Positions 20,734 through 61,017 of a stretch of DNA of 64,000 nucleotides are shown here, piece after piece. Source of the DNA: Guillardia theta CCMP2712 (lineage: Eukaryota; Protista; Cryptophyta); assembly GCF_000315625.1 (NCBI RefSeq), contig NW_005434613.1, forward strand, positions 55,998 to 119,997, written 5' to 3'. A model generated the notes under the pieces. The model saw only the letters and a program-made list of their open reading frames with translations, had not been told where the DNA came from and did not search any database. Each line of letters begins with the position of its first letter. Position 1 is the stretch's first letter. The translations under genes were made by a program, and so were the position numbers.

Positions 20734-22929
20734 TCACTGATGGTAGTAAAATCCCGGCGGCGACCCATTGGCTTCGCTCATGATGACAAGTGGGCTGATC
20801 TGTCCAGAGCTCAAGTCCGAAAGGCCCCGAGCTTGTAGCAGGGCCGGCGCCCTCTGAGTCAAGTCGCTGATCCTGCTCTCTACGACCTGCAGCTTTCTGT
20901 TCATGGCGGTGATGAGCTTCGAGTTCTCGATCTTGATGAACTCGCCCACAGCCTTGATGAGCTTGTTGGCATCCTGCTGAGAGGAGGAGGAGGTGGCCGT
21001 GGAGGGCGGCCTCTCCTCAACCTTGGAGGCACCTGAGAGTCGCGGGGCTACCCCAGAGCTGGACAGGCTCTGCATGAGCAGGGAGTTCCTGGCGGAGCGG
21101 AGCAACTGAGAGACGTTCATGTTGGCTCGTCGTCGGCTCATCAACCTCTTGGCCATGTAGAACCATCGGACCGTGGACGTGCTCAAGTCCGCCTGCTCCT
21201 TCTCTACGAAGGCCTTGCAGGAGCGCGAGAGGTCTGAGAACTCCTCGAAGAGATCGCTGGGAAACTCGCTGAGCACATCGAAGAAAGTGTCTGCGAAGAT
21301 GACGATGCAGACGACGGAGCTGGTGGAGACGTACTCACACTCCATGCCATGCTCTCCTCTCCATCGAGGGTCTCCGACCAGGCAAGACTCTCCGAAGCAG
21401 TCCGTCTCGTTGAGCACGGCGACGGTGCTGCCATTCTGAAGAAGAACTCGGACGCAGCCCTTGCGGATGATGTAGACGCGGTCACAGACTTGATCCATGG
21501 TGGCGATGGGAACGTTCGCGTCGAAGGTTTCAACCAGAGACTCCTCGAACATCCGGACCAGCAGCCGGTCCTTCAGGGGATGAACTACCGCCTTGAAGAG
21601 AGCGATCGAGCCAAGGTAGTCCTTGAACATGTTGAGGTAGATCGGCGATCTCAGCTGGCGGGGAATGTGGCTGATCATGCCGAGCTGCCTGTTCCGCTCC
21701 TGCTGGACTGCGTAGTCCAAGTCCAGCCAGCTGATGATCTTCGTCCTCATGGAGTGTGGGACGTGTGCCCCCCTCAGGAAGTCCCTGACCTCTCGCCGCG
21801 CGTCCTCGCACTCGCGCTTGAGCTGCGAGGCCTTCAGGTGCATCGTCTGCACCTCCGACAACATCGTGCCGAACACCATGACGCCAACAAACATGCTGCC
21901 GATGGTGTACAGGCGCTCGTAGGTGTTCTGCGGCGTGATCTCCCCGAAGCCAACAGTAGCAAAGATGGTGTTGGTGAAGTATATCATCACGACGTAGCTT
22001 CCGAAGGGGCTGCCATCGCAGGGCAGCGATCGGCTTGTCAAGAACTCGCACACTTGCTCTTCAGTCGACGACAGTTGCTTGACTAGCCAGAAGAGACACG
22101 ACGTCGTATGGACCACCAGGAAAACGTAGACAATCATCTGCAGCGTCCGCAAGACGTATCCTGGCAACCTGATCTTCTCTTCAGCCCACTCCATGAAGGT
22201 CCTGGCTGCGCCGATCTTGAGTAGCCTTGAAAGTCGGAGGAGTCGGAAGGGCTTCACGAGCCTGAGCAATTGAAGATTCCCAAGGTGCTGATTGCTATTC
22301 GCTGTTTCTTCCGTGCATCCCGCGACGACGATGTACTCCATGAGCGAGGTCGGGATGGACGTTACCGCATCAAAGAGGAAGGAACCCTTGAGGTAGTTCC
22401 ACCAGCTCGACCGCAAGGACTCCTCATACACGCCGTCGACCATCGTTCCCGAGCAGAAGGAGATCAGCAGCTGGAAGACGAAGAAAATGTCGACGAACAC
22501 GTCGAACTTGATGGTGGGTAGAGAGGAACAAGGCGGAGTGTTCCAGTAAAAGCAAACTTCGAACTGTATCACGATGGCGGTGTACAGGAGCAGCAAGGCG
22601 CCTATCAAGGCTACTATCTTGGCAAAGGCAGATTCAGGGTGAACCAGCCAGGCCTGCGTGGCTTTCGGGCCGCCGAAGAATCTCGCGAAGAACGTCTTGT
22701 TCTTTCCTGCGTTGTCGTACAAGCTCTGGAAGTGAAGGTGCCCGCCCGAGCGTCTCGCTACCTGCAGCGACGGGTCTGGAAAGTTGGGTCGGAATCCTGA
22801 GATGTCGAAGGGGGAGCGAGCGGCTGAGTTCGTCCTCCCTAGGGGAGAAGCTACCTCCCCTTCCTCGGGAACTCCGATCACCAGCTCTCCCACCAAGTTG
22901 AAATCCTTCCAAGACGTACTCTTCTGCAT
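20734..22929 (-). CDS. Six-TM K+ channel with C-linker and cyclic-nucleotide-binding-homology domain (EAG/CNG/HCN superfamily), paralog B; intronless
   Basis: 731-aa ORF. S4 LLRLVKPFRLLRLSRLLK, pore FATVGFGEITP, CNBD RVYIIRKGCV...CFGE. Confidence 0.92.
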   Translation of the reverse strand: MQKSTSWKDFNLVGELVIGVPEEGEVASPLGRTNSAARSPFDISGFRPNFPDPSLQVARRSGGHLHFQSLYDNAGKNKTFFARFFGGPKATQAWLVHPESAFAKIVALIGALLLLYTAIVIQFEVCFYWNTPPCSSLPTIKFDVFVDIFFVFQLLISFCSGTMVDGVYEESLRSSWWNYLKGSFLFDAVTSIPTSLMEYIVVAGCTEETANSNQHLGNLQLLRLVKPFRLLRLSRLLKIGAARTFMEWAEEKIRLPGYVLRTLQMIVYVFLVVHTTSCLFWLVKQLSSTEEQVCEFLTSRSLPCDGSPFGSYVVMIYFTNTIFATVGFGEITPQNTYERLYTIGSMFVGVMVFGTMLSEVQTMHLKASQLKRECEDARREVRDFLRGAHVPHSMRTKIISWLDLDYAVQQERNRQLGMISHIPRQLRSPIYLNMFKDYLGSIALFKAVVHPLKDRLLVRMFEESLVETFDANVPIATMDQVCDRVYIIRKGCVRVLLQNGSTVAVLNETDCFGESCLVGDPRWRGEHGMECEYVSTSSVVCIVIFADTFFDVLSEFPSDLFEEFSDLSRSCKAFVEKEQADLSTSTVRWFYMAKRLMSRRRANMNVSQLLRSARNSLLMQSLSSSGVAPRLSGASKVEERPPSTATSSSSQQDANKLIKAVGEFIKIENSKLITAMNRKLQVVESRISDLTQRAPALLQARGLSDLSSGQISPLVIMSEANGSPPGFYYHQ

Positions 22930-29600: not shown

Positions 29601-30372
29601 CTGACGCTGAAGCAGGAGGAGCGACGTTAAACATCGGGCCTCCGCAATGGGTAAGGGGAATGAGATGAGGAGAGAAGGAGAAAAGCAGGGGAGAACGAGA
29701 GAGGAGAGGAGAGCAGAGCAGAGGAGGAGAAAATAGATGGGAGGGAGGGGACAGGACAGGACAGGACAGGACAGGACAGGACAGGACAGGACAGGACAGG
29801 ACAGGACAGGATAGGACAGGACAGGACAGGACAGGACAGGACAGGACAGGAAGGGACAGAACTTGTCAGACAGAGAGGAGAGGGTCTCAGGCAAGTGATC
29901 GAGTTTGTCATGCTACTGTCTTGCAGGTCAACTCGTTGATAGTTGAGCCTCTCCTGCTCCCCCCGGGTGTCTGGCTAGCTGTAAACTTCGTCTGGATGGC
30001 TGTCCTGTGCTACTTCCTCGCTCGGCTGATGCAGTACCTCTCTCGCAAGACCTTGGTGCGTCCTCCTCCTGCTTCTCCTCCTCTTGCTCCTCTCACTCAA
30101 CTCTTCTTATCTGCCCGTTTCTGCTCTGCCCCCAGCTCCTACTCCTTCGTCTTTTGCTTCTGCTTTTCCTCCTTTTCCTCCCCTGCTGTCTCCACCCACT
30201 TTCCTTTCCTCGTATCTCCTTCTCCTGTTGCCCTCACGTTCTCCTTCTCTTCCGCGTCCTCCCCGCGTCCTCCTCCTCCCTCACGCGCTCTCACGTGTCT
30301 GACTGAGAGCCAGGGGCTAATGACAGTTCGCTGTATCCTGAACAAGAAGATCAAGTCCGAGGATGGGCTGCT
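23735..30372 (+). CDS. Conserved uncharacterised protein; helical N-terminal domain, C-terminal coiled coil plus two TM helices; >18 exons, 3' end lost near N-gap
   Basis: Continuous spliced reading: LLILISKYAQC...WIRQVPLWVLIYEGI|FDYAP...NISQEAKSAIEDL|REQSLLNGLKLSSEDYQ|...DVEDVSYVSSPFLP...|GEW|VPFGANNIVALNERLG...|FINFEAEINFPEEDG|HFGMH...|YENELKQ|VIGD...|SLAIMQVVLAGSFAFDIIDRIG|PGVWLAVNFVWMAVLCYFL. Confidence 0.75.
26534..26685. repeat. (GAT)n/(GAC)n intronic microsatellite
   Basis: Direct inspection; lies in an intron of the 23735 gene. A similar tract is at 27994-28215. Confidence 0.9.
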
Positions 30373-30843
30373 GAGTGAGCAGAGGGGAGGAGTTGATATG
30401 GGGGAGAGGGAGAGGGAAGGGAAGGTCGTGGTGGCAAGGGAAAGAAGGTAGGATGAGGAGTGGAGGATAGGAGGGAAGGGCAGTGAAAGGAAGAGAGGAT
30501 CGAAAGGGCAAATAACGGACAAAGGAGGAGGAGGAGGAGGAGAGGGAGAGGGAAGAAGTTGAAGCAGGGGATGAGGAAATCGTGGAATTTGAAACGCGGA
30601 GGCGAGGGATGAGAGAGAAGGGAGAAGGAAGAGAGGAGAAGGGAAAGGGAGGGGAGAAGGGAAAGGGAAGAGAGGAGAAGGGAAAGGGAAGAGAGGAGAA
30701 GGGAAAGGGAAGTGAGGAGAAGGGAGAAGGACAAGTGATAAGGAGGGAGAAGGAAGAGAGGAGAAGCAGAACGAAAAGACTACAGACAACCCCATCCACG
30801 GACGGTCGAACACAAAAGAGCAATTGGTTTGATCTTGCTATCG

Positions 30844-31773
30844 NNNNNNNNNNNNNNNNNNNNNNNNNNNNNNNNNNNNNNNNNNNNNNNNNNNNNNNNN
30901 NNNNNNNNNNNNNNNNNNNNNNNNNNNNNNNNNNNNNNNNNNNNNNNNNNNNNNNNNNNNNNNNNNNNNNNNNNNNNNNNNNNNNNNNNNNNNNNNNNNN
31001 NNNNNNNNNNNNNNNNNNNNNNNNNNNNNNNNNNNNNNNNNNNNNNNNNNNNNNNNNNNNNNNNNNNNNNNNNNNNNNNNNNNNNNNNNNNNNNNNNNNN
31101 NNNNNNNNNNNNNNNNNNNNNNNNNNNNNNNNNNNNNNNNNNNNNNNNNNNNNNNNNNNNNNNNNNNNNNNNNNNNNNNNNNNNNNNNNNNNNNNNNNNN
31201 NNNNNNNNNNNNNNNNNNNNNNNNNNNNNNNNNNNNNNNNNNNNNNNNNNNNNNNNNNNNNNNNNNNNNNNNNNNNNNNNNNNNNNNNNNNNNNNNNNNN
31301 NNNNNNNNNNNNNNNNNNNNNNNNNNNNNNNNNNNNNNNNNNNNNNNNNNNNNNNNNNNNNNNNNNNNNNNNNNNNNNNNNNNNNNNNNNNNNNNNNNNN
31401 NNNNNNNNNNNNNNNNNNNNNNNNNNNNNNNNNNNNNNNNNNNNNNNNNNNNNNNNNNNNNNNNNNNNNNNNNNNNNNNNNNNNNNNNNNNNNNNNNNNN
31501 NNNNNNNNNNNNNNNNNNNNNNNNNNNNNNNNNNNNNNNNNNNNNNNNNNNNNNNNNNNNNNNNNNNNNNNNNNNNNNNNNNNNNNNNNNNNNNNNNNNN
31601 NNNNNNNNNNNNNNNNNNNNNNNNNNNNNNNNNNNNNNNNNNNNNNNNNNNNNNNNNNNNNNNNNNNNNNNNNNNNNNNNNNNNNNNNNNNNNNNNNNNN
31701 NNNNNNNNNNNNNNNNNNNNNNNNNNNNNNNNNNNNNNNNNNNNNNNNNNNNNNNNNNNNNNNNNNNNNNNNN
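30844..31773. other. Assembly gap (N run); 100-N gaps also at 8851, 28388, 40052, 42648, 44613, 47328
   Basis: N characters, mostly flanked by simple repeats. Confidence 1.
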
Positions 31774-32344
31774 AGAGGAGAGGAGGAGAGAGGAGAGGAG
31801 CGGACTGCACAGCACAGGGGAGAGGAGAGGAGGAGAGACGAGAGGAGAGGAGAGGAGAGGAGAGGAGAGGAGGAGAGAGGAGAGGAGAGGAGAGGAGGAG
31901 AGACGAGAGGAGCTGACGAGAGGAGCAGGGGGAGATTGAGCGAGCAATGGCCATCTCCAAGCTTCAAGGGTCCCACATCAAGTAGTTTCTCCTGCATGCA
32001 TCCTCCTCCTACTTCCTTGCGGGCAGTCCAACTTACCCGGTTGCTCCTGCTCCTGCTGGAGGCAGTGAGAGCGCGACAGTGAGACTTGTGAAGGGTTTCA
32101 GTAGCTTCATACAAGCAAAAAGGAACCGCAACTTCACTTCTCTCCTCCTTCGACTGCTGCTGCTCCCTCTTCGCACAAGCTCTGTAGCTGACCCGTCGGG
32201 TCAAGCCGCAAGGATCCTCGTCCGACTCCGATCCGCCTGTTCACGGCTTGCTCGTCGTCGTCATTGTCGTCGTCGTCGGAGTGGAGGCAGACGACATGGA
32301 AGGAGATCATCGGATGTTGTTGCCCTGCTGTAACTTGTTGAGAG

Positions 32345-35489: not shown

Positions 35490-37715
35490 ATGAGTCGAGC
35501 ATTCCAATTTTCAAGCAAGAATGTTTTCGACAGTTTCAAATCGAATGACAGAGGGTCGCAAGGCAGCTTGCCACGCTCCGCTTCAAGCAACAGCCTCAAT
35601 GGAGATCTCAAACGGACGACCTCGAAAGCCATCGAGATGTTCCGATCGGGTTTGCGCTCCGGCTCTTCAGTGAGGAGGAGGAGCAACGTGAGCTTTACGG
35701 GAGTTCCCAAGAACGACTACTTTCCCTCCAAGAGCAATGTCTTCTGGAGATTCCTAGGCATCGGAGATCGTCAGGGGAATCTGAAAGCATCGCGACTGAT
35801 TCACCCGGAGTCTCCCTTCAACTACACCGTCTCTCTGGTCTCTTCGCTCCTCCTGCTCTACACGGCCATTGTAGTGCAAGTCACTGTCAGCTTCTTCTGG
35901 AATGCGCCTGACTGCTGGAGCTCTCCCACGCTGCCTTTCGACATGTTTGTGGACACTTTCTTTGTCTTCCAGATCTTTTTGACTTTCTTCACTGGGGTTG
36001 AGATTCAAGGCGTGTACGCAGACTCACTGGGGGCGGTTGCTTGGAATTACGTCACTCATGCCTTCATCTTTGATGTATTCACGTCCATCCCTTCTTCGTA
36101 TGTGGAATATTTCGCGGTAAAAGAATGCGGAAGCTCCGGCACCAGCGTCAACATGAACAGCCTCCTAATCATGAGGTGCATAAAACCTCTCAGGTTGCTG
36201 AAGTTGTCGAGGATGTTCAGGATGAAGAAGATTCGTCTCATCCTCGACTCAATCGAGGAATTCTTTCAACTGCCAGGGTTCATGATGAGGATGTTCAGTA
36301 TGCTCGCTGGAATCTCGCTGCTCGTGCACAGTTGTGCTTGTATCTACTGGCTTATCAAGGAGATGACCTTCAGCCAGGACGAGATTTGTCTTTTCCTCTC
36401 CCACTACAACCTCAACTGCTATTCTGGCCTGCTCGAGAAGTATGTCCTCACCATCTACTTCATGAACACAATCTTCACCACAGTTGGCTTCGGCGACATC
36501 ACCCCTGAGAACACAGCTGAGAGGCTCTTCACCATCATCGCCATGTACGCCGGCGTCATGGTCTTCGGCACCATGCTCTCGGAGGTTCAGAGCGCGCACA
36601 TGCACGCGTTCCGCCTGCAGAAGCAGTGCGACCAGGTGCACCATGACGTGAAGGACTTCCTGCGGTCTACCAACGTCCCCAAGGCTGTCAGCAGGCGCGT
36701 GCTGGAGTGGGTGGATCTCGACTATATGGTGAAGATGAGGAGGAACCAGCGGGAGGCAGCTCTCTCCCTCATCCCTCCTCAGCTCCGCATGCCCATCTTC
36801 GATCACCTGCACAAGGAGATGCTGTATGGGATCCCCTTCCTCCGAGACCTGGCGGACATCCACCGCGATCAGTTCCTCCTCAACCTCTTCTCTCTTGCTC
36901 AGCCCATCACTTTCTGCAGCTTCATGCCCATCGCAACGGTGGACGACGCTTGTGACCGTCTCTACATCATCACACACGGCAGCGTCAGCGTCGTTCTGCC
37001 CTCCGGGTCAATCGTCTCCACACTCAACGCTGGCGACTTTTTCGGAGAGAACAGCTTCCTCGGGGAGACAACATGGAGGGGAGAGCACGGGCAGGAGGTC
37101 GACTTCTGTGCTCTGACATCTGTAGTCTGCATGTACATCTTGAAAGAAGACTTCATGCGGCTGCTCCAGTCATTCCCTGGACACATCCACGAGGAGATCG
37201 AGGCTCTCACGCAGGACCTCAAGGAGCTGCGGGAGGAGCAGGCTGCTTCGGATGATCCTCCTACCTCCGTCGCCATCCGCTGGTTCTATCTCTTCCGCAA
37301 GGCCAAGTGCCACATGCTTCACACGGATGGCACGAGAGACCTGCTGATCAAGACGGTTCAGAAGCTCAAGTTTGCATCCATCTTCGGCAAGCACGACACT
37401 CAACGTGGCAAGTTTGAGGTCATCGCGGAGAAGCCAATCCCCGATGAGGAAGAGATAGTTCCGACCTGGGAGGGCAGGGGACCACAGGAAGAGGCGCAGA
37501 GTCACGGAAGCTCCGGGGACATTCTTGTTGCTATTCAGCAGCTGATCAGAGCGGAGCATGACTCGCTGCGCGCTTGCTTCGACCGTCGCATCAGTGAGAT
37601 CACAACTCGCATGGACGCGCTGGAGGAGATGTGCTTCACTGAGGACACGGCCAAGGCAGATACAGCGAGCGTGTCAGGAGGAGATATCCAGCCTGTCGAT
37701 GAGAGATATGCATAG
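35490..37715 (+). CDS. Six-TM K+ channel with CNBD-type domain, paralog B'; intronless
   Basis: 741-aa ORF. S4 IKPLRLLKLSRMFR, pore FTTVGFGDITP, CNBD RLYIITHGSV...FFGE. Colinear with 20734-22929 (HPES, CDR.YII, WRGEHG, RWFY). Confidence 0.92.
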   Translation: MSRAFQFSSKNVFDSFKSNDRGSQGSLPRSASSNSLNGDLKRTTSKAIEMFRSGLRSGSSVRRRSNVSFTGVPKNDYFPSKSNVFWRFLGIGDRQGNLKASRLIHPESPFNYTVSLVSSLLLLYTAIVVQVTVSFFWNAPDCWSSPTLPFDMFVDTFFVFQIFLTFFTGVEIQGVYADSLGAVAWNYVTHAFIFDVFTSIPSSYVEYFAVKECGSSGTSVNMNSLLIMRCIKPLRLLKLSRMFRMKKIRLILDSIEEFFQLPGFMMRMFSMLAGISLLVHSCACIYWLIKEMTFSQDEICLFLSHYNLNCYSGLLEKYVLTIYFMNTIFTTVGFGDITPENTAERLFTIIAMYAGVMVFGTMLSEVQSAHMHAFRLQKQCDQVHHDVKDFLRSTNVPKAVSRRVLEWVDLDYMVKMRRNQREAALSLIPPQLRMPIFDHLHKEMLYGIPFLRDLADIHRDQFLLNLFSLAQPITFCSFMPIATVDDACDRLYIITHGSVSVVLPSGSIVSTLNAGDFFGENSFLGETTWRGEHGQEVDFCALTSVVCMYILKEDFMRLLQSFPGHIHEEIEALTQDLKELREEQAASDDPPTSVAIRWFYLFRKAKCHMLHTDGTRDLLIKTVQKLKFASIFGKHDTQRGKFEVIAEKPIPDEEEIVPTWEGRGPQEEAQSHGSSGDILVAIQQLIRAEHDSLRACFDRRISEITTRMDALEEMCFTEDTAKADTASVSGGDIQPVDERYA

Positions 37716-47038: not shown

Positions 47039-48233
47039 TCAGTCGAGAACCTCGAGGTCGATCGAGGTTGAGGGACCAGCCGTACTCGCCCCCGTCTTCT
47101 TCAGCAGCCGATAGGCGAAGATGGTGGGGGAGAGGAAGGAGGGTTTGACGAAAGAGAGGTCAAGGGGGGAGACCTGAGCTCCCAAGTCACCCACGACAAA
47201 GGCGGCGAAGCACAGAGCACCTTGAAGTGCTTGACGGCTTCTACCTCGAAGAAACTCCTCCTCATCCTGCCGTCCTTGTCATAGAGCCTCCCAGCCCTGC
47301 CCCCCCCCCTCCCCTTAAAAGAATGACNNNNNNNNNNNNNNNNNNNNNNNNNNNNNNNNNNNNNNNNNNNNNNNNNNNNNNNNNNNNNNNNNNNNNNNNN
47401 NNNNNNNNNNNNNNNNNNNNNNNNNNNTCCTCCTCCTCCTCCTCCTCCTCCTCCTCCTCCTCCTCCTCCTCCTCCTCCGTCGTCACCTCCATCCCCCCGG
47501 GATCGAATCGTCGTCGTGGAACAGCAGTACTTCCGTCCTGTCGTCACAGAGCTGCAGCAGACTTGCGAGCAGAAGGGAGAAGGATGGCAGGAAGAACGTG
47601 AGGTCAGATCCGATGATAGAGCTCCAACGCTCTCTTGACAACTCCTCCTCTTCCTCCCCCCACTCGTGTGACCGGATCTCGACCAACACGTCCGGGTTTG
47701 CTGAGACGTTCTGAGCGAGGTACCACAAGGAGGAGGCCCTGTCTGTCGCCACAACTCGCGATGCTCCCGCACGTGAAGCCGCCATGGCGCCGAGCCCATG
47801 GCTAGATCCAAGCTCGAGGACGTTACGGTGGGAGAAGGAGGTGCGATGCGTCTCGACGTAGTTCATGAGCGTCTGCCCCGAGGCTTTACGGGTGCGAAGT
47901 ACAGGAGCATGCAGGGCTCACCAGTGCTGCAGGCCAGAGGAAGAACTCGCCATCGTTGCCTGCCTGCGTGAGACCGCCGTCAGGTCTGTAGGGGAGGAGG
48001 GACGAGGAAGGACGAAGGGAATCATCGAGGAAGGTATGGGGGAGGATCAGACGAGGAGGAAAGAATAGGGTAGGATCGTCGTGTTGAGGAGTGAGAACCT
48101 TGCAGGGATCCTCGTAGAGGACGTAGGGAGTTGCCAGGAGGGCTGAACTAATCTCGCGCCTCCACATTTTGTGTGTCCCATCGAATAGGCCGAAGGAGGA
48201 GAGCGAGTCTATGCTGTTGACCTCCAACCCCAT
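47039..48233 (-). CDS. SAM-dependent protein lysine methyltransferase, METTL21/family-16-like; multi-exon, N-gap inside
   Basis: G.FLWPAAL, VLELGSSHGLGAM (motif I), VVATD, N, EWG, IIGSDL. C-terminal exon VSPLD...IFAYRLLKK...LEVLD*. Confidence 0.85.
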
Positions 48234-51478: not shown

Positions 51479-51794
51479 GCGGATCCCACGGGACCCTCAT
51501 CCTCTATCTTGAAGTTGTACCTCTACCTCTGACCTCTATAAACGTACGAGAATTCCTTGTCCCTCCTCGCTTGCTCGTCGTTCTCCCAGTCTCCTTCCTT
51601 CCTCTCTCTTTTCCCACCATCTCGCTTCAACTCCCTCACGGCAGCTGTTGCCGATGAGGGGCTGGCGAGCAGAAGAACAGCGAGGGAGGGTGAGCAGGGG
51701 ACCTAAAGGGGAGGACGATCATCGGGCTTGTCTTACATGGTTTTGTTAGACCGAAAGAATACAATCACCTGCTAGTAAACAATAACTCTCTATG

Positions 51795-54700
51795 CTACCT
51801 TCTGCCCTGCACCCTCCCCAGCAGGCTTCTCATCAGCTCCTCGTTTCTCCTCGCCAGCTCCTCCTGTCTGTGTTGTCAGCGGCACAAACACCCGCCCCGC
51901 CCCTTCCCCTCCCCCTCTCACGACCTCTATCCTCCCCATTCCATTCCCTTGTCCTCCTCACCGTCTAACACCCTTCTCTTCCCTTCCCTTCCCCTCCCTT
52001 ACGCTCTCCATCTCCCCTTCCTCCCCCCTCCCTCGCTGCTCCTCACGTTGTGAAGGAGAAGTTCATCCATGGAAGTCATGCGCTGCTTTCGCAGCTGCTT
52101 CAGGTCGTCAGCTGGGCTTCAGCTCGGTCACTCCTCTTACCTCGATGGCTCTCCTCGCCTCCTTCACGTTCTCCTTCACTTCCTCTTGGATCGCATTCAG
52201 CCCATGCAGCGATGCCAGCGCAACCTGAGCAGGTGAGGAACTCAAAGTTAGCCCCCTGCCGACGCCTACTCCTCCTCCTCCTCCCCTGCCCCATGCCCCC
52301 TGCCCCCTGCCCCCTGCCCCCTGCCCCCTGCCCCCTGCCCCCTCCTCCTCCCCTGCCTCCTTCTTGTCCTCCTCCTCTGTCACTCGTTTTCTGTGTCTCT
52401 ATCCTCCTCTGATCCATGCCTGCTCCAGGTTTCTCCCTGCCTTTGGTTGTTTCCTCCCCTTTATCCTCTCATCCATCTCGCTTCCTCTTTCGCTCGCTTC
52501 AAGTCACCCTTCGTCTACTCCATTCTTGCTCCAGTCGCTGTCGTCCTTCCTCCCCCTCCCTCTTATCCTGTGTCGTTCCTCTCTCTCCGTCTTATCCTGT
52601 GTCCTTCCTCCCTCTCCCTCCCGTCTCTCTTCTCTTCCTCTTCCTCACCCCGTCGATATCCACGCTTGAGATTCTCGTCGGATCCTCGCCGAGTCCAAAC
52701 GCCATGAAGAAATCTTGAGCCATCGGCCCCATGTGGCGAACCTGATGAGGCTCGGTCAACCTCCTCCCTCCCCCGTCGACTCCTTCTCCAAGACCCGTCT
52801 CCTCCTCCTTCGCCCCGATCCTTCCTCTCTCCCTCTCCTCTTCCTCCACGTTTCTGATACTCTACTCCTGTGCTGTTCAGCTCCTCTCCATCACTTCCAT
52901 CATGAACAGCTCTCCCTGAACTCACATCATCGCCTTGGTATGACCAAGTGCTGATAGGAACCTCCTTCACAAGTTTCTGCGAGAAAGTGAATGGCAGAGG
53001 GAGGGAGGGAAGGGGGTAGGGAGAGAGGGAGAGAGGGAGGGAGCTGGGAGGGAGGGGGAGAGGGAGGGATGGAGGGAGCTGGAAGGGAGAGGAGCAGCAG
53101 GAACAGGAACAGGGCGGGAAGGGAGGTGAGGTAGGAGACAGGCAGGCAGCGGACCTGCAGGACGAGTCTGGGGTTCACTTGTTGGATGTCTTCCTTACTG
53201 TTCCTGTCCGAAAGGACAGACCACGAGCTGCATGCGACGGTCAGTCCCTGCTCCCCCCCTCCCCCCAGCTCACGCCTCACCTGCTCCTCGGCTCCAGCAC
53301 GACGCCCAGCTCCTTCCCAGAGGGGGTGAAGCCAGTCACGAACTTGATGCCTCCTCTTGCCCGCACGTTGAAGGATCCGTCGGCCTTGGAGCTGAAGGGA
53401 GGAAGCGAGCTGTCTCCCGCTACGCTCCCGTCGGTAAAGACGAAGCTCCCGGTGTGCGCGGCAGGGGCCGCGTTGACGCCCAGGGAGACGGTTGTGGCAT
53501 TGGCGAGGAGGCTACTGCACTTGATAACGTACTCCTCCTCCGGGAAGACGATGCTAGACGGCAGGTTGCCAGTGGTGATGACGGTACCGGACACGTCGGG
53601 GAACGAGATAATGTTCTGGCCTGTCGGGGGGGAGATCTCGAACACCGTGCTTCCTGAGGATACATTGGCTATCCCCTCGGAGAACCGCAAGGGGAACCTT
53701 CCGTGGATCACCGATCTCACCTCCACCTTCCCAGCTCGATCCGGGCTGCCTATGGTGATCAGGCTCCCCGCAAACACGAGCTTGCCCAGCAAGTTCGCCT
53801 CCCCGATGACGTTGAGCGACTCTACGACGTCGGGGAAGTTGCCGGTGGTCAAGATGGTTCCGGTCACGTCCGGCAGGGTGATGACGTGGCTACCCGACGG
53901 CTCCTCGACCCCCAGGGAGATGCTAGAGGCGCCCTGGGAGGTTCCAGGGAAGCGGAGGGGGGAGGAACCAGTCAGAACGGCGTTGACCTCCAACAAGCTG
54001 GCGGCTCCCGGCGTGCCAAAGATGACGTCATCGTTTGTGAAGGAGGCGCCTTTGTAGAAGCTCGCCTGCCCGATGAAGGAAGTGGTCTCGAGAACGTTGA
54101 GCATGTTGCCGGTGGTGAGGACAGTCCCGCTGACGTCAGGGAGAGTGAGCAGCCGGTCCTCCGTCGGGCTCTCAACCCCTATGGAGAGGACGTTGTCCGG
54201 CCAGGATCGGTCGGAGAAGGTCAAGGGGACGGAGCCGAGGAACTGAACGTTGAACCTGACGGAGCTCGCAGTCCGCGGATCTCCTATCAGCAAATTTCCC
54301 CCGATCCTCGTCTCCCCGTCCAGGGACGTCACCCCCAGCACCGACACCTCCTCAAATACCTCAGGCAACGTCCCAGCTGTGACGATCGACCCACTGGAGT
54401 CCGGCAGGTGGACGATAGCTGAGGAGGACGGCTCCGGGAGGTGGAGGGTGAGAGTCGACGACGTCCTGTCCTTGTGCACGAAGGCCAGGGGGAACTGCCC
54501 GACCGCAAAGCCCTGCAGCTCGACCTTGGACCCGGGCTGACCGATGGACGAGTTTCCCATGACCAGCAGCTTTTGCTGCACTGCCAAGCTGCTGAACGCT
54601 GACTCCTTGCTAATGTCCTCGAGGTTCCCTGTGGTGATAAGTGTTCCCGTCACATCCGGCACCACCAGCTCTGCCAGGAACGTGTCCTGCTGCTTGTCCG

Positions 54701-57700
54701 GGTACCACCCCTGCTCCGCGCACTTGAACGCCTCGGCTGCCGTCGGGTCCGCCACGATCTTCGACTCGTCCACGAAGTAGGAGCGCTCGCCGCTGAAGAT
54801 GGGCGAGAGAAGCTGCGTTATTTTCCCCTGATGCCACTCCACCTCCGCCAGGTCGCACAGGCTTGCTGCAGCAGGGGAGAGCTGAGGGCCAAGGAACCGC
54901 ATGGAGTCGTAGGAGTGTCCGGTGGAGACGACGAAGCTGGTCCAGACGCCTTCTGGCAGCACGTCCTTGACTACCAGGACGTCCTCCCAGACCTTGTTGG
55001 AGGTGTTGAGCCCTTGTACGACGGCGCCGACGAGGCTGGCAGAGAAAGAGCTTCTGGGAAGGATACGGACCAGCGAGATAACAGTGGGGCTCACGAAGTC
55101 CATCCCCAGCATGCACTGGGTGACTGTCAGCTGGAGGTCAGCTGGGAGCGCCAGGGCTGTCAAATCGAACACGTCAGAGCTGGCAGTCACTGCGGTACCG
55201 CTGGCTGTGGAGGTCTGGAGGGAGAAGAAGGTGGAGGCGTTGCCATCGTATGCGCAGAAAGGGTCGAGAGGAGATAGGCAGGGAGGCGTGTCGGTGGAGC
55301 AATCCTTGGATCCCAGGATGCCGTTGCAAGCAAAGGAGGTTGAGTTGACAGCCACCTGAGGGGGGAACAAGTCAGGCCGGGCTGGTACGCTTGACAAGCT
55401 AGACTACTCACGTCCTTGACAAACCCGACGGATTCGTTGGACGTCTGCTGCCCTGCCCCATTGCATGTGCAAGTGTCAACGTCGTAGGAACTGCAGAGTT
55501 GACGTCCCGACACGTCCAGGCACTGGTAGAGAGTGCGGTTGTACTGGATGATAGCGCGAGCGTACAGCAGGCCAGCCATCTTAGTCCGAGCTACGAAGCC
55601 TTGGCGGATCGCGTAGTAACCGAGTTCATGGTAGTCTGAGATAGAGAGAGATGAGAGTACATTCCGGCAGACAGTCTGATCGATCTGCTGCGTTCCTTCC
55701 ACAGGCACTCTGAGACAACCAGTCAGACAACCATGAGCGAGAAAGTTAGGATGAGGATGAGGATGAGTATGAGGATGAGGATGAGGGTGAGGGTGAAGGT
55801 GAGGAGGTGGTGGCGGTGGAGGAGGAGGGAGCGAGAAACTGATCTCTAGTACCTGAACGCCACCTTCCCCTTCACTCCAACCGGCAGTGACGGCGCGTCC
55901 GTGCTCAGGTAGTCTCGAAGAGCGATGTCGACACCAAACAGGTGCGGAACGGTCAGCTGGACCCGAGCCGGGCCGGAGTCCGGGTTGCTGAATCGCATGC
56001 TGACGTCACCATCGACCCAGGAGAAGAACTCGAGCGAGGAGTAGCTGGAAGCTGAGCCCAAGGAAATGTTGCCCTGGAGATTGACGTCTCCTCCTACGTA
56101 GAGCTGCTCGTTGGGAATGCGAATGTTGGGCAGACCCAACAGGTTCCCAGTGGTCAGGACAGTCCCAGAGACGTCAGGAAAGGTGATGTTGCGCGGTTGG
56201 GTGGCTGGGATGGTGCAGACTTGAGTGTAGGTGGCGTCGTTCTCGTTGATGAGAAAGTTGAAACAGCCACTGATCCGGGACGTGTTCCCCAGGTTGAGGT
56301 AGGAGAAGGTGGGAGAGCCCGGGCTCCCGAAGTTAACCTCACTCTGGATGTCCAGTCCTTGCAGCTCGATGCTCTTGAAGACAAGATCGTCTGTGTTGCC
56401 CGTCGTAATGACCGTCCCCGTCGCGTCGGGGAAGACAAGCCTCCTGTTGCCCCCCAGCGGCACCTGGTTGATCATCCCGTAGGGTGCCGAGTAGGATGGC
56501 AGAACGCCGTCAACTCGCGTGAGTGGAGCAGTTCCCAGCGCTGCAAAGTCAACAATGGTAACAGGATCGCCAGGCTGTCCACCATGCTGGAAGATGAAGT
56601 TGTTCTTGCCTCGAAGGCCCAGCAGGAGATTGATGTCCTCCAAGTTCCCGCTCGTGATCATGGTGCCATTGGCCTCCGGCAGCTCGATCTTGCGCGTTCC
56701 CGTTGGGATGGAGAAGGACAGGCGAGTCGCCTCGTTCCTCATGTAGAAGTGAACGTCAAACTGCTCGTCCTTCTGCAGCCAGCAGTCGGTGGCGCTCGAG
56801 TAGGCCAGAAGGCACTCGCGCGAGATCTTGTTCAACAGATCCCCCTGTCGATACGAGGTCAAAGAAATCTTGACCGGCGACCCCGGCGTGTCGACCGTAA
56901 CGGCCCCGAGTGAAGAGTCTTTGACGACAGTCAAGGTCGGAGGAACTGAGCACTTGGCCTGGACCGCCAGCCTGCTGACTGCTGGATCGCAGCTGGACCT
57001 GGAGAAGCTCTTGATCCTTGCCGTGCCGATCTTGAGCAGGGTAAGGGCATCCTTGGTGAGAGCGACGGTGCAGCCAGCGCCGAGACAGAGATCCTTGAAC
57101 GCTGCCTCGATTTCTGTCGCGTTGCCGCAGCTCCTTGTGCTGGCGTTGTAGAGGCCGCAAACTCCGTCGACGTTCTCTCCCCAAGACACGAAGCTGATGC
57201 TCGAGATCGAGTCTCCACCAGGGCCGTCGCAGGTGATATTGGCGAGTTGAGAAGTGTTGGCAGGCAGCTCAAGGCAGGTGGACACTCGGGTGAGGTAGTA
57301 AGTCTTGTCGCTGTTGAAGTTGGCGTTCCACAAGGACGGGCTGTCCGACCATCCTGAGCAGAACTGGGACGTTGCGCTACCACAGAAAGTAGTTCCACGT
57401 CCCGAGGAGAGAAACTTCCTGGTCGAATGACTCTGGACGATGACGTCACACGTCTTCGAATCGAGGGGGCACAGGCTGATGTCCCAGCAGGGGATCCCTC
57501 CACACTTGACGGGCAGCAGCTCGAACTCAGTCAGAGGGTCGGAAGGGGAGCTGCTGGATTGGGCCAGCCGCAGCACTTGGCAGTCTGACCTCAGATACCA
57601 CTGGGATATTGGGCAGCTCTTACTGGTGACGATGAGATTGTTTCCGTTGCCGTCCTTCATCTGAACCCTGTAGTACCGAGAGGCGAGCACCAGTCCGCAC

Positions 57701-60700
57701 GTCGGATCCGACCTCTTACACTGCTGGAGGCAGTTGTCAGTGGTGTCGATCCAGAGCGTAGCAGAGCCTGTGATGTTGTACTTCTTGTACTCCGGGAAGT
57801 CGATGAACGGGTTGGCCATGAGCGGCCCAGGCACGTCGTTGACGCAGCTTGTCCTGGGGCGGATGCCCCAGGTGAATGGCTTTGGGACGTCATTGAACTG
57901 ATCCTCAGCAGCTTCGAATCGAGGGGCTGACCGGACGACGATGTCACTTGACAAGTAGCCGACGAAGTTGACCAGGGTCGACCGGTTCGAGCCAAGGACA
58001 ACCGCCCCGTCTAAGAACGCCTTGCCGCTCACGTTGAGGTTCTGTCCTACGAAATGATCGATGTCCTGCAGGTTTCCTGTCGTGATCACTCGGCCGCTGG
58101 CGTCAGGGAACTGCATCGAAGATCTCCGCTGCGACTGGGTGCCGAACTTGAGGACCGTCCTGGAGGCCTCTCGAGTCGTGAACGCAGTCCCGTTGAAGGA
58201 ACCGACATAATCGTAGGGGTTCTGAAAGATGATAGTCTCGTTCATCCTCGGCCTCACACTCAAAATCGCTGCATCCCTATTGCTGTCGTTGGATACCTGG
58301 AACCCTTGGTTGATGTATGAGGGGCCACTGACAAACACACTCGTCAGAGTTCCCGTGTCTTTCGTGATCCCCTCCAGGTTCCCTGTCGTCAGCACTGTCC
58401 CGTCGACGAAGGGAACCACCAGCCTCGACACGGGGTCCATCTTCAGCGTGGGGCTCGAGGGCTCGAACTCCAACACGGTAGTGGACGTGGAAGTGAGGAC
58501 GTTAAGTTGACCCGGCCCTCTGCTAGCATCGTAGGTGTATCCGGCCCGCTGGCCTCCGTGCGGGTAGAGGTAGTGCTTGCTGGGCTCCCTTGGCGGAAGC
58601 CTCACACCGGATTTGAGTTTGTCGGGCCCGAACTCAAAAAGGCCGTTGACCTGCATGTCATTCTGCACTCGCAGGCTCGATACATTGCCGGACTCAAAGC
58701 TGATCTTGTCAAGATTCCCGGTAGTCAAAAGGTCGCCGTCAACGAAGGAAGGCACGGACAAGGTGTTGTTTGCCAGCTTGCTGCTGACCTGTTGGATCCC
58801 GCACGTGCCGTCGTAACATCTTTCAAACTTGAGCGCGGTCGTGCTCTCGTAGCTCGACCAGCCCTTGAGCTCGGCCGAGAGAACGCCCATGGCGGTGATG
58901 TCCTCAAGGTTGCCAGTCGTCACGATGGTGCCGCTGGCATCCGGGATCACCAGCGTCCGAGGCCTTTGAGGCTCAGTGAAGTTCACTGTGGTGGTGAAGT
59001 TGGGTACTTGCGACAGGTCCATGCATCGGAAGCCGAAGTCGTGCTCGTAGCAGGTAAGCGAGGGATCGTTCACACATGCCCCCCCATCCGTACACTCATC
59101 AGAGCTCTTGCATATCTCGCCATTCCTTGAGCCCCCAACGCAGAACTGAGGCCGCGATCGCCGCGCCGGGCAAACCTTCTGGTTGACAGCTGCAGGCGTG
59201 AGGACGCTGCAGCAGCAAACGAAGCACCTCTCAAGGGTTGTGACGCTCGCAAAGGTGTTCTTCCAGGTGTGTTCTGGCGAGTACTGGTTTGCGATTCTAG
59301 TGAAGATGCTCGGGAGGTCTGCGTTCTGTACTGATGCTTCGATGAAGAACTTCGCCAGCTCATTCCTTCCATTCCAAGGAGTGGAGACATTGTGCGACTG
59401 AATGAGTTTCCATAGACTTGCCAGCATGTCACGGGTGGCAGTGCTCGCGTGTATTGTGTCGCTGTAGAAGTCACTCAGCAGGTAGTAAACTCGGTACGCG
59501 TCAAATGTGGTAAGGTTCCAGTTCAGCCCCCGACAGTCTAAGAAGTTCATGTCCAAAGTTTCATTGGAGCAGGTCGTGTTGGAGCAAGAGAAACGTGAAG
59601 GTGGTGGAGGAATGATGTTCCCAAGGTCCTTGTGCCTCCCAGTATACACGAAAGTATCGTCTCCGCGCAACCCTGGGAGCTGATCGATATCCTCACGGTT
59701 TCCCGACGTGATGACTAGGCCAGTGCGATCAGGGAAGGTGATCGACCGCTGCTGACTGGGAGTCTCCAGGCAGAGTTTGGTATACATGCCGTCATTCACA
59801 CCTCCGTCCAGAATTAGCGGGCATTCCTTGTCAATGACTCCGTCGAAGTAGACCTGACTGTTGGTCGAATCCCTCCCGACCTGGATGTAGTCTCCTCTGA
59901 GCTCTGAAAGCATGTTCACCCGCATTGTGGCATTCCACTGACCCTCTGGCTTTGCAAACTCAATGCCGTTAATCAGCTCGCCGTGTAGTGACATGTCGAT
60001 GTTGCGGATCATCGTTAGCGCCTTGCTGATTCCTCCAATGTTCTTGTATGTGAGGAACAGAGAGTCCTTGTGGGCGACAGCATTGGGTGAGCCAACTGTG
60101 AATTCGTAAGCCGCGGTTGATGTCGAGTCCTCCAAGCTCTTTACTAGCACAGCACCGTACTTCTTCTCCGACGCATCGCAACCGAACTGTCCGATAATGC
60201 CGCAAGTATTGTTACAGTCATCGAACACTGGGACATTGCAGGGAGTGGCGGAAACTTTCAAAATGCACTGTCTCATGTTCAAACCTGAGCCGACCTGGTT
60301 GCACTGATCGCCACAACCATTGTTCACTGGGAGTCCGCAAGGGACGGCTAGAGTGTTGACGTTACAGGATCGATCGCAAAACCTCAAAGGCTGCCAATCG
60401 TCCACCCCGTTGCAGCTCTCGAAGTATTGGTCGTTCCATCGAAGAGCTCCCATCTGATCCTTTGTGCACTCGATGTTGTCCACGGGCTGAGAGATGATCA
60501 CACCGTTCACCCTGAGCTCTCCTTCAATCCTCGCTCCAGCTGTTGCTAGCAAGTTGTTCTTGATGATGTACCCTTGATCCGAAAGGGAGACCCAACCTGT
60601 GGCCTCCCCCACAAGAGTGAGAAACAAACATGCCTGTATCCCAAGGAAGTGCCTCTGGCTTCGCAGTCCTGATCCTCCATATCTCAGACGTCTTCTGTCT

Positions 60701-61017
60701 GGCCGGGAACGCTTCATCTGACATAACTTTGATCCTCTATCACATTCCTCCCTTTCACCGCAGCATCTTCCGACATGAATCCCGCTCTTTACGTGCCGTG
60801 GATCATCAGAGCCATGGCATGACTCGCAGGGAGTGCTCGCTGCCTCCTGATGCTCTTCGCTCTCGTTCCTTACTTGCCGACATGTTCGCCCACTGCAGCG
60901 TGCATCCGAACAGTCAGGGGCGAGTTGCTGATGTCGAGGATCGAAACAGCCTCGCGTTCCCGACTCATCTCTGAGTCCGAACGCCTCTAGCAGCGCAGCT
61001 AATGACGGTGGTCTCAT
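51795..61017 (-). CDS. Giant secreted/surface fibre-like protein: 13 tail-fibre-like PDxxGTxxTTGN repeats, Gal-lectin and discoidin-like inserts, C-terminal Peptidase S74 intramolecular chaperone domain + coiled coil; 9 exons
   Basis: Exons 61017(or 60717)-55853, 55709-55412 and 55355-53281, then six small exons: SSWSVLSDRNSKEDIQQVNPRLVLQ|KLVKEVPISTWSYQGDD|VRHMGPMAQDFFMAFGLGEDPTRISSVDIDG|VALASLHGLNAIQEE...|QLRKQ...|EELARRNEEL...GRR*. All junctions are GT-AG and in frame. Confidence 0.88.

Follow-up and report, generated by a model that had tools for sequence, protein, structure and literature searches.

How a nuclear gene of a cryptophyte alga comes to end in the kind of self-cleaving chaperone that folds phage tail fibres is the question raised by a 64,000-nucleotide stretch of Guillardia theta CCMP2712 (contig NW_005434613.1, positions 55,998 to 119,997), referred to here as the window. 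A first-pass annotation, made from the letters of the window and its open reading frames (ORFs), had proposed that six micro-exons at the 3' end of a minus-strand gene conceal a Peptidase_S74/ICA domain with a Ser-Lys catalytic dyad. We confirmed that this is a real Peptidase_S74/ICA domain of bacterial type. The best explanation of the whole gene, and in our judgment a probable one, is a nuclear host gene for a homotrimeric fibre with a self-cleaving C-terminal chaperone, the latter a module derived from bacteria or phages. Three parts make up the encoded protein: an N-terminus resembling a signal peptide, a repeat body, and a bacterial-type C-terminal module composed of a strand, the S74 domain and a coiled-coil helix.

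All of the peptide pieces quoted for the S74 end were found on the minus strand in a three-frame translation of positions 51700-53520, and every micro-exon piece was flanked by a canonical AG acceptor and GT donor. The six micro-exons (53227-51795) extend the long upstream ORFs into one nine-exon gene. The last residues of ORF 53277-55397 are ...GVVLEPRS, with a GTGAGG donor next to them, the piece after the ...ATGCAG acceptor reads SSWSVLSDRNSKEDIQQVNPRLVLQ, and two upstream introns of 143 nt and 56 nt connect this ORF to a 1723-codon ORF at 55846-61017. Joining the nine exons (61017-51795, minus strand) gave a single frame of 2652 codons with one terminal stop, with all eight introns of the GT-AG type and 43-424 nt in length. 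This gene is present in the public annotation as GUITHDRAFT_142133 (2651 aa; EKX41203.1 / XP_005828183.1; P0170 hereafter), retrieved by a protein search with exon 1. Our independent splice model matched P0170 except for one Gln, which falls at a NAGNAG acceptor where the public model uses the CAG 3 nt downstream. The domain proposed by the first-pass annotation is therefore hidden in the sense that a six-frame ORF view does not reveal it, but it was already present in the public annotation, and its novelty had been overrated: UniRef100_L1IY49, the same protein, carries the name "Peptidase S74 domain-containing protein". A literature search found no papers mentioning GUITHDRAFT_142133 or its accessions. 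The longest intron (424 nt), between micro-exons 3 and 4, contains a C-rich simple repeat at 52281-52348.

Proteins that encode the same domain without interruption were used for comparison with the spliced model. P0002 and P0001, both from environmental contigs, were 51-52% identical to it; in the P0002 alignment one residue was gapped, at the third of the junctions that fall within the domain, and in the P0001 alignment three residues were gapped there. P0200, an ORF called by TransDecoder in the EukProt transcriptome of the cryptophyte Teleaulax amphioxeia, aligned collinearly with P0170 (39% identity, about 2600 columns). It too has an S74 domain at its end, which passes PF13884 with 27.3 bits. 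Its alignment ran gap-free through four of the five junctions, the four inside the domain. Since this transcriptome ORF is collinear throughout, a relative transcribes the family as a single long mRNA. These comparisons also bear on the suggestion that the gene is bacterial contamination, or an artefact of gene modelling that strings unrelated ORFs together. Although the module is 47-62% identical to bacterial proteins, GT-AG introns interrupt the domain, the gene lies on a 494.8-kb contig with eukaryotic genes, and the entire model is matched collinearly by the Teleaulax transcript and by several homologues without interruptions. We rejected contamination or artefact as refuted by the collinear homologues and consider it extremely improbable.

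The identity of the domain was established from several directions. The C-terminus of the public protein (P0170:2430-2651) matched Pfam PF13884 at residues 2519-2565 with 31.2 bits (E 2.7e-7; cut-off 22). A module profile made from bacterial sequences only scored the spliced C-terminus at 152 bits, with all of 200 shuffles below 3 bits, and this match spanned profile positions 2-125 of 126, running through four splice junctions with small gaps. The S-D-x-x-x-K motif had been placed at 53194-53211 by the first-pass annotation, and SDRNSK lies exactly there; it corresponds to residues 2519-2524, and Ser2519 and Lys2524 were invariant in 24 aligned sequences. Each of the aligned module sequences (24/24) passed PF13884 at E<=0.001. 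An AlphaFold2 model of P0170:2500-2606 had a pLDDT of 86.6, and a Foldseek search with it placed the ICA domain of MyRF (7dc3) at ranks 1-3 (probability 1.00, TM 0.66-0.69, E 8e-3), phage T5 4uw8 at ranks 4-5, GA-1 3gud at rank 6 and endoNF 3gw6 from rank 15. A longer, 171-aa model with the whole C-terminal helix matched coiled coils in Foldseek and VIA-align and was uninformative because the long helix dominated, which the second model, without most of the helix, resolved. The structure models place a long helix after the S74 core, and P0170 ends 133 aa past Ser2519 with this helix or coiled coil, as had been proposed. Pfam searches with single micro-exons gave no match, and a six-frame PF13884 scan of the whole genome missed the window gene, its matches being an ORF of a virus-like element (on C94) and one exon of a paralogue (on C38); both scans missed it because the micro-exon pieces are too short.

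An ICA domain with MyRF as its best structural match could belong to a membrane-tethered transcription factor of the MYRF/MrfA kind, released by ICA cleavage. Such a protein would share the ICA domain with ours, but its other defining parts were not observed. The first-pass annotation had seen no Ndt80-type domain, and we likewise obtained no Pfam match to Ndt80/PhoG at E<=0.1 on four segments of P0170 or on the raw ORFs. Hydropathy in 19-residue windows gave no transmembrane-grade segment in P0170 beyond its N-terminal hydrophobic stretch, and none following the S74 domain; a coiled coil closes the protein, and the module profile did not reach the MYRF ICA chains in PDB even at E<=1. Where MYRF and Dictyostelium MrfA carry a transcription factor, the passenger here is a fibre of about 2400 aa. 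A MYRF-like factor was accordingly rejected, being refuted by domain content, and we assign it a negligible probability. The statement in the first-pass annotation that eukaryotic ICA domains are known mainly from MYRF and MrfA is out of date, given the fibres of polinton-like viruses (PMC12220804) and the glycofibrils of alveolates (10.1101/2025.09.30.679562).

We searched for the relatives of the module as a unit of about 125 aa, consisting of an F.VRA.GG strand and the S74 domain. A total of 14,988 cluster representatives were observed at E<=1e-3, the top ones being 50-60% identical. More than 583 places in bacterial and archaeal assemblies (GTDB, one genome per species) encode the module at 46-62% identity, in Chloroflexota, Verrucomicrobiota, Planctomycetota, Acidobacteriota, Pseudomonadota and other phyla, while only 31 places were observed in IMG/VR. 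In a tree of the module (133 rows, 127 columns, quick search, midpoint root), a branch with 69% support set ten eukaryote-like rows apart. This group was nested inside a starred set of 58 rows (97), the remainder of which were bacterial or unlabelled; most viral rows fell outside the starred set, and those inside it grouped with bacteria. The module probably goes back to one acquisition from bacteria or their phages that predates the split of the cryptophyte paralogues and orthologues. As the sampling was similarity-based and the root was set at the midpoint, a single acquisition is the best reading rather than a proven one. The proposal of a bacterial or phage-type module in a eukaryotic nuclear gene thus held up, on the bacterial matches, the nesting in the tree, the introns and the cellular neighbours.

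The same data can be set against another source, in which a fibre gene of a eukaryotic virus, polinton-like or giant, was domesticated and perhaps still has a virus-related role such as decoy or entry factor. Large modular fibres with a C-terminal Peptidase_S74 domain, up to 3.9k aa in length, are common among the polinton-like viruses of cryptophytes and other protists (PMC12220804), and G. theta has a virus-like element of its own. The strongest classical S74 match in the genome (68 bits) was an AT-rich, intronless ORF of 672 aa (L001, C94:201938-205105, with L128, C94:192000-201999). This ORF lies in a dense ORF block with a D5_N/PriCT_2/DUF5906 primase-helicase and a SLATT_5 protein, and the block probably corresponds to one of the polinton-like elements that are reported to be integrated in the G. 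theta genome. However, the window gene has eight spliceosomal introns, a GC content resembling that of its surroundings, and cellular neighbours. Its module matches far more places in bacterial genomes than in IMG/VR, and the viral rows of the tree lie mostly outside the module clade or, when inside, with bacteria. The C94 domain was not matched by the module profile over its length and belongs to another subfamily than the domains of the host genes. A domesticated eukaryotic-virus fibre is thus an unlikely source for the window gene. That the window gene is itself part of an endogenous or active viral element was rejected, as it has eight introns and cellular neighbours and does not lie among intronless viral hallmark genes.

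A host gene with a bacterial-type module is further indicated by its paralogues. Two other G. theta loci have the same body and S74 end (C51:442043-446608, L007/L014; C38:528024-532981, L009/L015), and both keep the dyad, as SDGSMK and SDARSK. Introns interrupt the S74 parts of these two as well, though not at the places where they interrupt the window gene, and the uninterrupted relatives L003 and L004 have no intron in the S74 domain. The introns therefore look lineage-specific and late. The fibre family has at least three Guillardia paralogues and a Teleaulax orthologue.

The body of the protein had an affinity of its own. A repeat-unit profile of 73 positions, with the consensus ...LSVEEPSGSRTLVLPDASGTVITTGNLEDI..., found 13 units in P0170. 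The body units measure about 85-90 aa and all contain a PDxSGTxxTTGN motif, and adjacent motifs lie 83-102 residues apart; Cys-rich inserts separate the repeat blocks. Searches of the body against PHROGs and NCBIfam gave no matches, and the repeat unit was missing from all bacterial and viral loci examined that carry the closest S74 modules. The same profile scored 61 bits on P0004, a protein of 730 aa with PHROG tail-fibre matches, which was observed on marine phage contigs between SU10-adaptor, Gp80 and T7-tail-like genes. There was also a weak match (E 8e-4) to a baseplate gene of Pelagibacter phage HTVC008M. By these comparisons the affinity of the body differs from that of the module, the body being of a marine phage tail fibre type and the module of a bacterial type. 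Larger relatives with an S74 end were observed among environmental sequences, namely P0185 and P0186 (5117-5118 aa) and P0176 (2819 aa), with 11-13 repeat units detected. These come from unlabelled metagenome contigs, and the family therefore extends past the two named cryptophytes.

The Cys-rich inserts may be lectin-like. A SUEL-lectin match within one of them (57040-57220; residues about 1266-1325) was below threshold, at 16.8 bits against a cut-off of 31.4. The insert in exon 3 (about 54700-55100) had a weak resemblance to F5/8 type C (discoidin) domains, with a best ESM Atlas score of 0.81, and was not used as evidence. Taken together, these two leads hint at carbohydrate-binding inserts in the fibre.

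At the other end of the protein, translation from the second Met (60717) would give about 2550 aa instead of 2651. From this Met the N-terminus has a long charged leader followed by one moderately hydrophobic stretch (mean 1.39 over 19 residues). P0170 contains 78 Cys, and its 33 NxS/T sequons exceed the 23 expected; the cysteines and the sequon excess therefore fit a protein of the secretory pathway.

In the mechanism that we propose, three chains would associate through the C-terminal chaperone and coiled coil, and this association would set the register so that the fibre folds from the C-terminus towards the N-terminus. Ser2519, activated by Lys2524, would then cut the Leu2518-Ser2519 bond and release a fragment of about 133 aa, leaving a mature homotrimeric fibre that is probably secreted or held at the cell surface. 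This is the mechanism established for endosialidase and tail-fibre chaperones, in which C-terminal trimerisation is followed by a Ser-Lys cut before the Ser. The cut just before the Ser of the window protein is predicted from endoNF and T5 pb1. ICA trimerisation followed by Ser-Lys cleavage is shown for MYRF and MrfA (PMC3828593; Li et al. 2013). A three-copy model was made for residues 290-460 of the homologue P0002, a part in which P0002 and the window protein share about 60% identity. It scored 0.83, and the best of three controls scored 0.32; among proteins of solved structure, 21 of 30 same-chain pairs and none of 23 single chains reached the mark set for this score. The runs shared at least 88% of contacts with a pLDDT of at least 81, and contacts followed a heptad pattern along the helix. 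Such a result speaks for binding without demonstrating it. Autocleavage, trimerisation in the cell and an extracellular location are predictions.

It could instead be that the domain only trimerises or folds the protein, its cleavage having been lost, or that the protein is intracellular and belongs, for example, to ejectisomes or the periplast. The N-terminal stretch is only moderately hydrophobic and is preceded by the long charged leader, as would suit an intracellular protein, but the numbers of sequons and cysteines fit the secretory pathway. The Ser and Lys are invariant across cryptophyte-like and bacterial sequences, both paralogues included, which argues for retained catalysis. We regard a non-cleaving or intracellular protein as quite unlikely.

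Several observations weigh against a secreted, self-cleaving trimeric fibre with a bacterial-type module, or limit how firmly it can be held. The PF13884 score of the window domain is above its cut-off yet modest, and PDB sequence searches (P0002:250-460 and profile A1) matched no ICA structure. The Foldseek E-values are weak, yet known ICA structures crowd the top of the list and the ranking is specific. Support for the coiled-coil tail in the last two exons is weak, coming from the reading frame, the splice signals, agreement with the public model and a low similarity to homologues; the intron before micro-exon 5 is 43-46 nt long. Exon junctions and transcription in G. theta itself are predicted from comparison with relatives. 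The tree has 127 columns, a midpoint root, a sample chosen by similarity to the query, and 69% support for the eukaryote clade. The signal peptide was judged from hydropathy alone, and secretion is likewise a prediction. Lastly, the trimer model was made on a homologue, and its score may reflect memory of solved ICA trimers.

We compared the window protein with the known systems that carry this chaperone. Bacterial chromosomal S74-ended proteins have the same module of about 125 aa (47-62% identical), the same dyad and a helix after it, but they are much shorter, at about 400-1200 aa, and their genes are intronless. Their bodies resemble trimeric adhesins in their repeats, consisting of UspA1-type or beta-roll repeats or of nothing recognisable, and the PDxSGTxxTTGN unit was not observed at the loci checked. 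The phage chaperones of K1F endosialidase (3gw6), the GA-1 neck appendage (3gud) and T5 pb1 (4uw8) share with the window protein the Pfam family, the S-D-x-x-x-K dyad, a C-terminal place in a fibre and the modelled fold, while the sequence similarity of these solved chaperones to the window domain is too low for HMMER. A likeness in the body was observed with the phage tail fibre P0004, whose repeat unit is homologous. Unlike the phage genes, the window gene is cellular, eukaryotic and intron-bearing, and it has no virion context.

Two further systems occur in protists or their viruses. Giant repeat proteins of alveolates with a C-terminal ICA domain have been linked to a trimeric glycofibril seen by cryo-EM (bioRxiv 10.1101/2025.09.30.679562), and the authors propose that the ICA domain of these TLP-12-type proteins drives the trimeric fibre (10.1101/2025.09.30.679562). 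These glycofibrils (e.g. Amoebophrya A0A8J1ZHD7) are likewise giant cellular repeat proteins of protists with a C-terminal ICA domain, but they belong to alveolates rather than to a cryptophyte. They are also built differently, from about 1,263 GSxxSx7 dodecapeptides in a glycosylated triple beta-helix, whereas the window protein has 13 units with Cys-rich inserts, and no GSxxSx7 array was seen in the P0170 body. The polinton-like virus fibres are likewise large, modular and S74-ended, and occur in cryptophyte genomes (PMC12220804). They belong to viral elements without introns and contain laminin_G_3, collagen or adenovirus-fibre domains, whereas the window gene has introns and host neighbours and none of these domains. 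The cryptophyte family differs from both in having its own body type and in being an intron-bearing host gene family.

The window gene would thus encode an undescribed ICA-capped trimeric fibre protein of an established type, already labelled automatically in public databases. The building of trimeric fibres by way of a self-cleaving C-terminal chaperone, as in phages and bacteria, would then be used by cellular genes of a cryptophyte alga; the main cases documented so far are MYRF and viruses, to which alveolates were recently added. The protein is a candidate for a fibrous structure of cryptophytes. Horizontal gene transfer into cryptophyte nuclei is unsurprising in itself, and the locus offers a clean example of a bacterial-type module that later gained spliceosomal introns, at positions that differ among the three paralogues. 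A wider possibility, which we put forward tentatively and think may well not hold, is that cryptophytes keep a conserved, expressed host family of giant fibres made wholly from phage and bacterial parts, with repeats of phage type and a chaperone of bacterial type. If true, this family could make up a cell structure not yet assigned, for instance a coat on the cell surface, flagellar hairs, or a receptor or decoy for contacts between virus and host, and a eukaryotic cell would, unusually, have taken over a prokaryotic fibre-assembly system in its entirety.

Table 1. Features of the window gene, with positions counted from the first letter of the window.
Feature	Position	Strand	Remarks
Exon 1	55853..61017	-	First repeat units and Cys-rich inserts; from the ORF list, gene model and identity to P0170
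Likely true start Met	60717	-	Signal-peptide-like hydrophobic stretch then at about 60589-60645; from hydropathy
Exon 2	55412..55709	-	Introns of 143 nt and 56 nt either side; GT-AG; collinear with P0001
Exon 3	53281..55355	-	Last repeat units and pre-S74 strand; ends ...EPRS
Last PDVSGTVITTGN motif, exon 3	53565-53603	-	
FNVRARGG motif, exon 3 pre-S74 strand		-	Fits the bacterial-type pattern F.VRA.GG
Micro-exon 1 (73 nt)	53155..53227	-	Catalytic dyad SDRNSK at 53194-53211
Predicted self-cleavage site	Between Leu codon 53212-53214 and Ser codon 53209-53211	-	In micro-exon 1
Micro-exon 2 (51 nt)	52926..52976	-	KLVKEVPISTWSYQGDD
Micro-exon 3 (93 nt)	52649..52741	-	Conserved RHMGPMAQDF...DIDG core
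Micro-exon 4 (84 nt)	52141..52224	-	End of S74 core and start of long helix
Micro-exon 5 (48 nt in public model; alternative acceptor 3 nt upstream, 52097)	52047..52094	-	Coiled-coil helix; lower confidence
Micro-exon 6 (69 nt, including TAG stop 51795-51797)	51795..51863	-	End of coiled coil; lower confidence

The window holds a total of 1530 N, with one N run near 47300-47400 (47262-47492); a GC content of 0.295 in 30001-32000 probably marks another. The N runs are assembly gaps. Of the other large ORFs of the window, one is for a DEAD-box helicase, one for a hemerythrin-domain protein and two are for cyclic-nucleotide-gated channels. The channel ORFs (Ion_trans and cNMP_binding), at 20734-22929 on the minus strand and 35490-37715 on the plus strand, are paralogous and lie about 13 kb apart.

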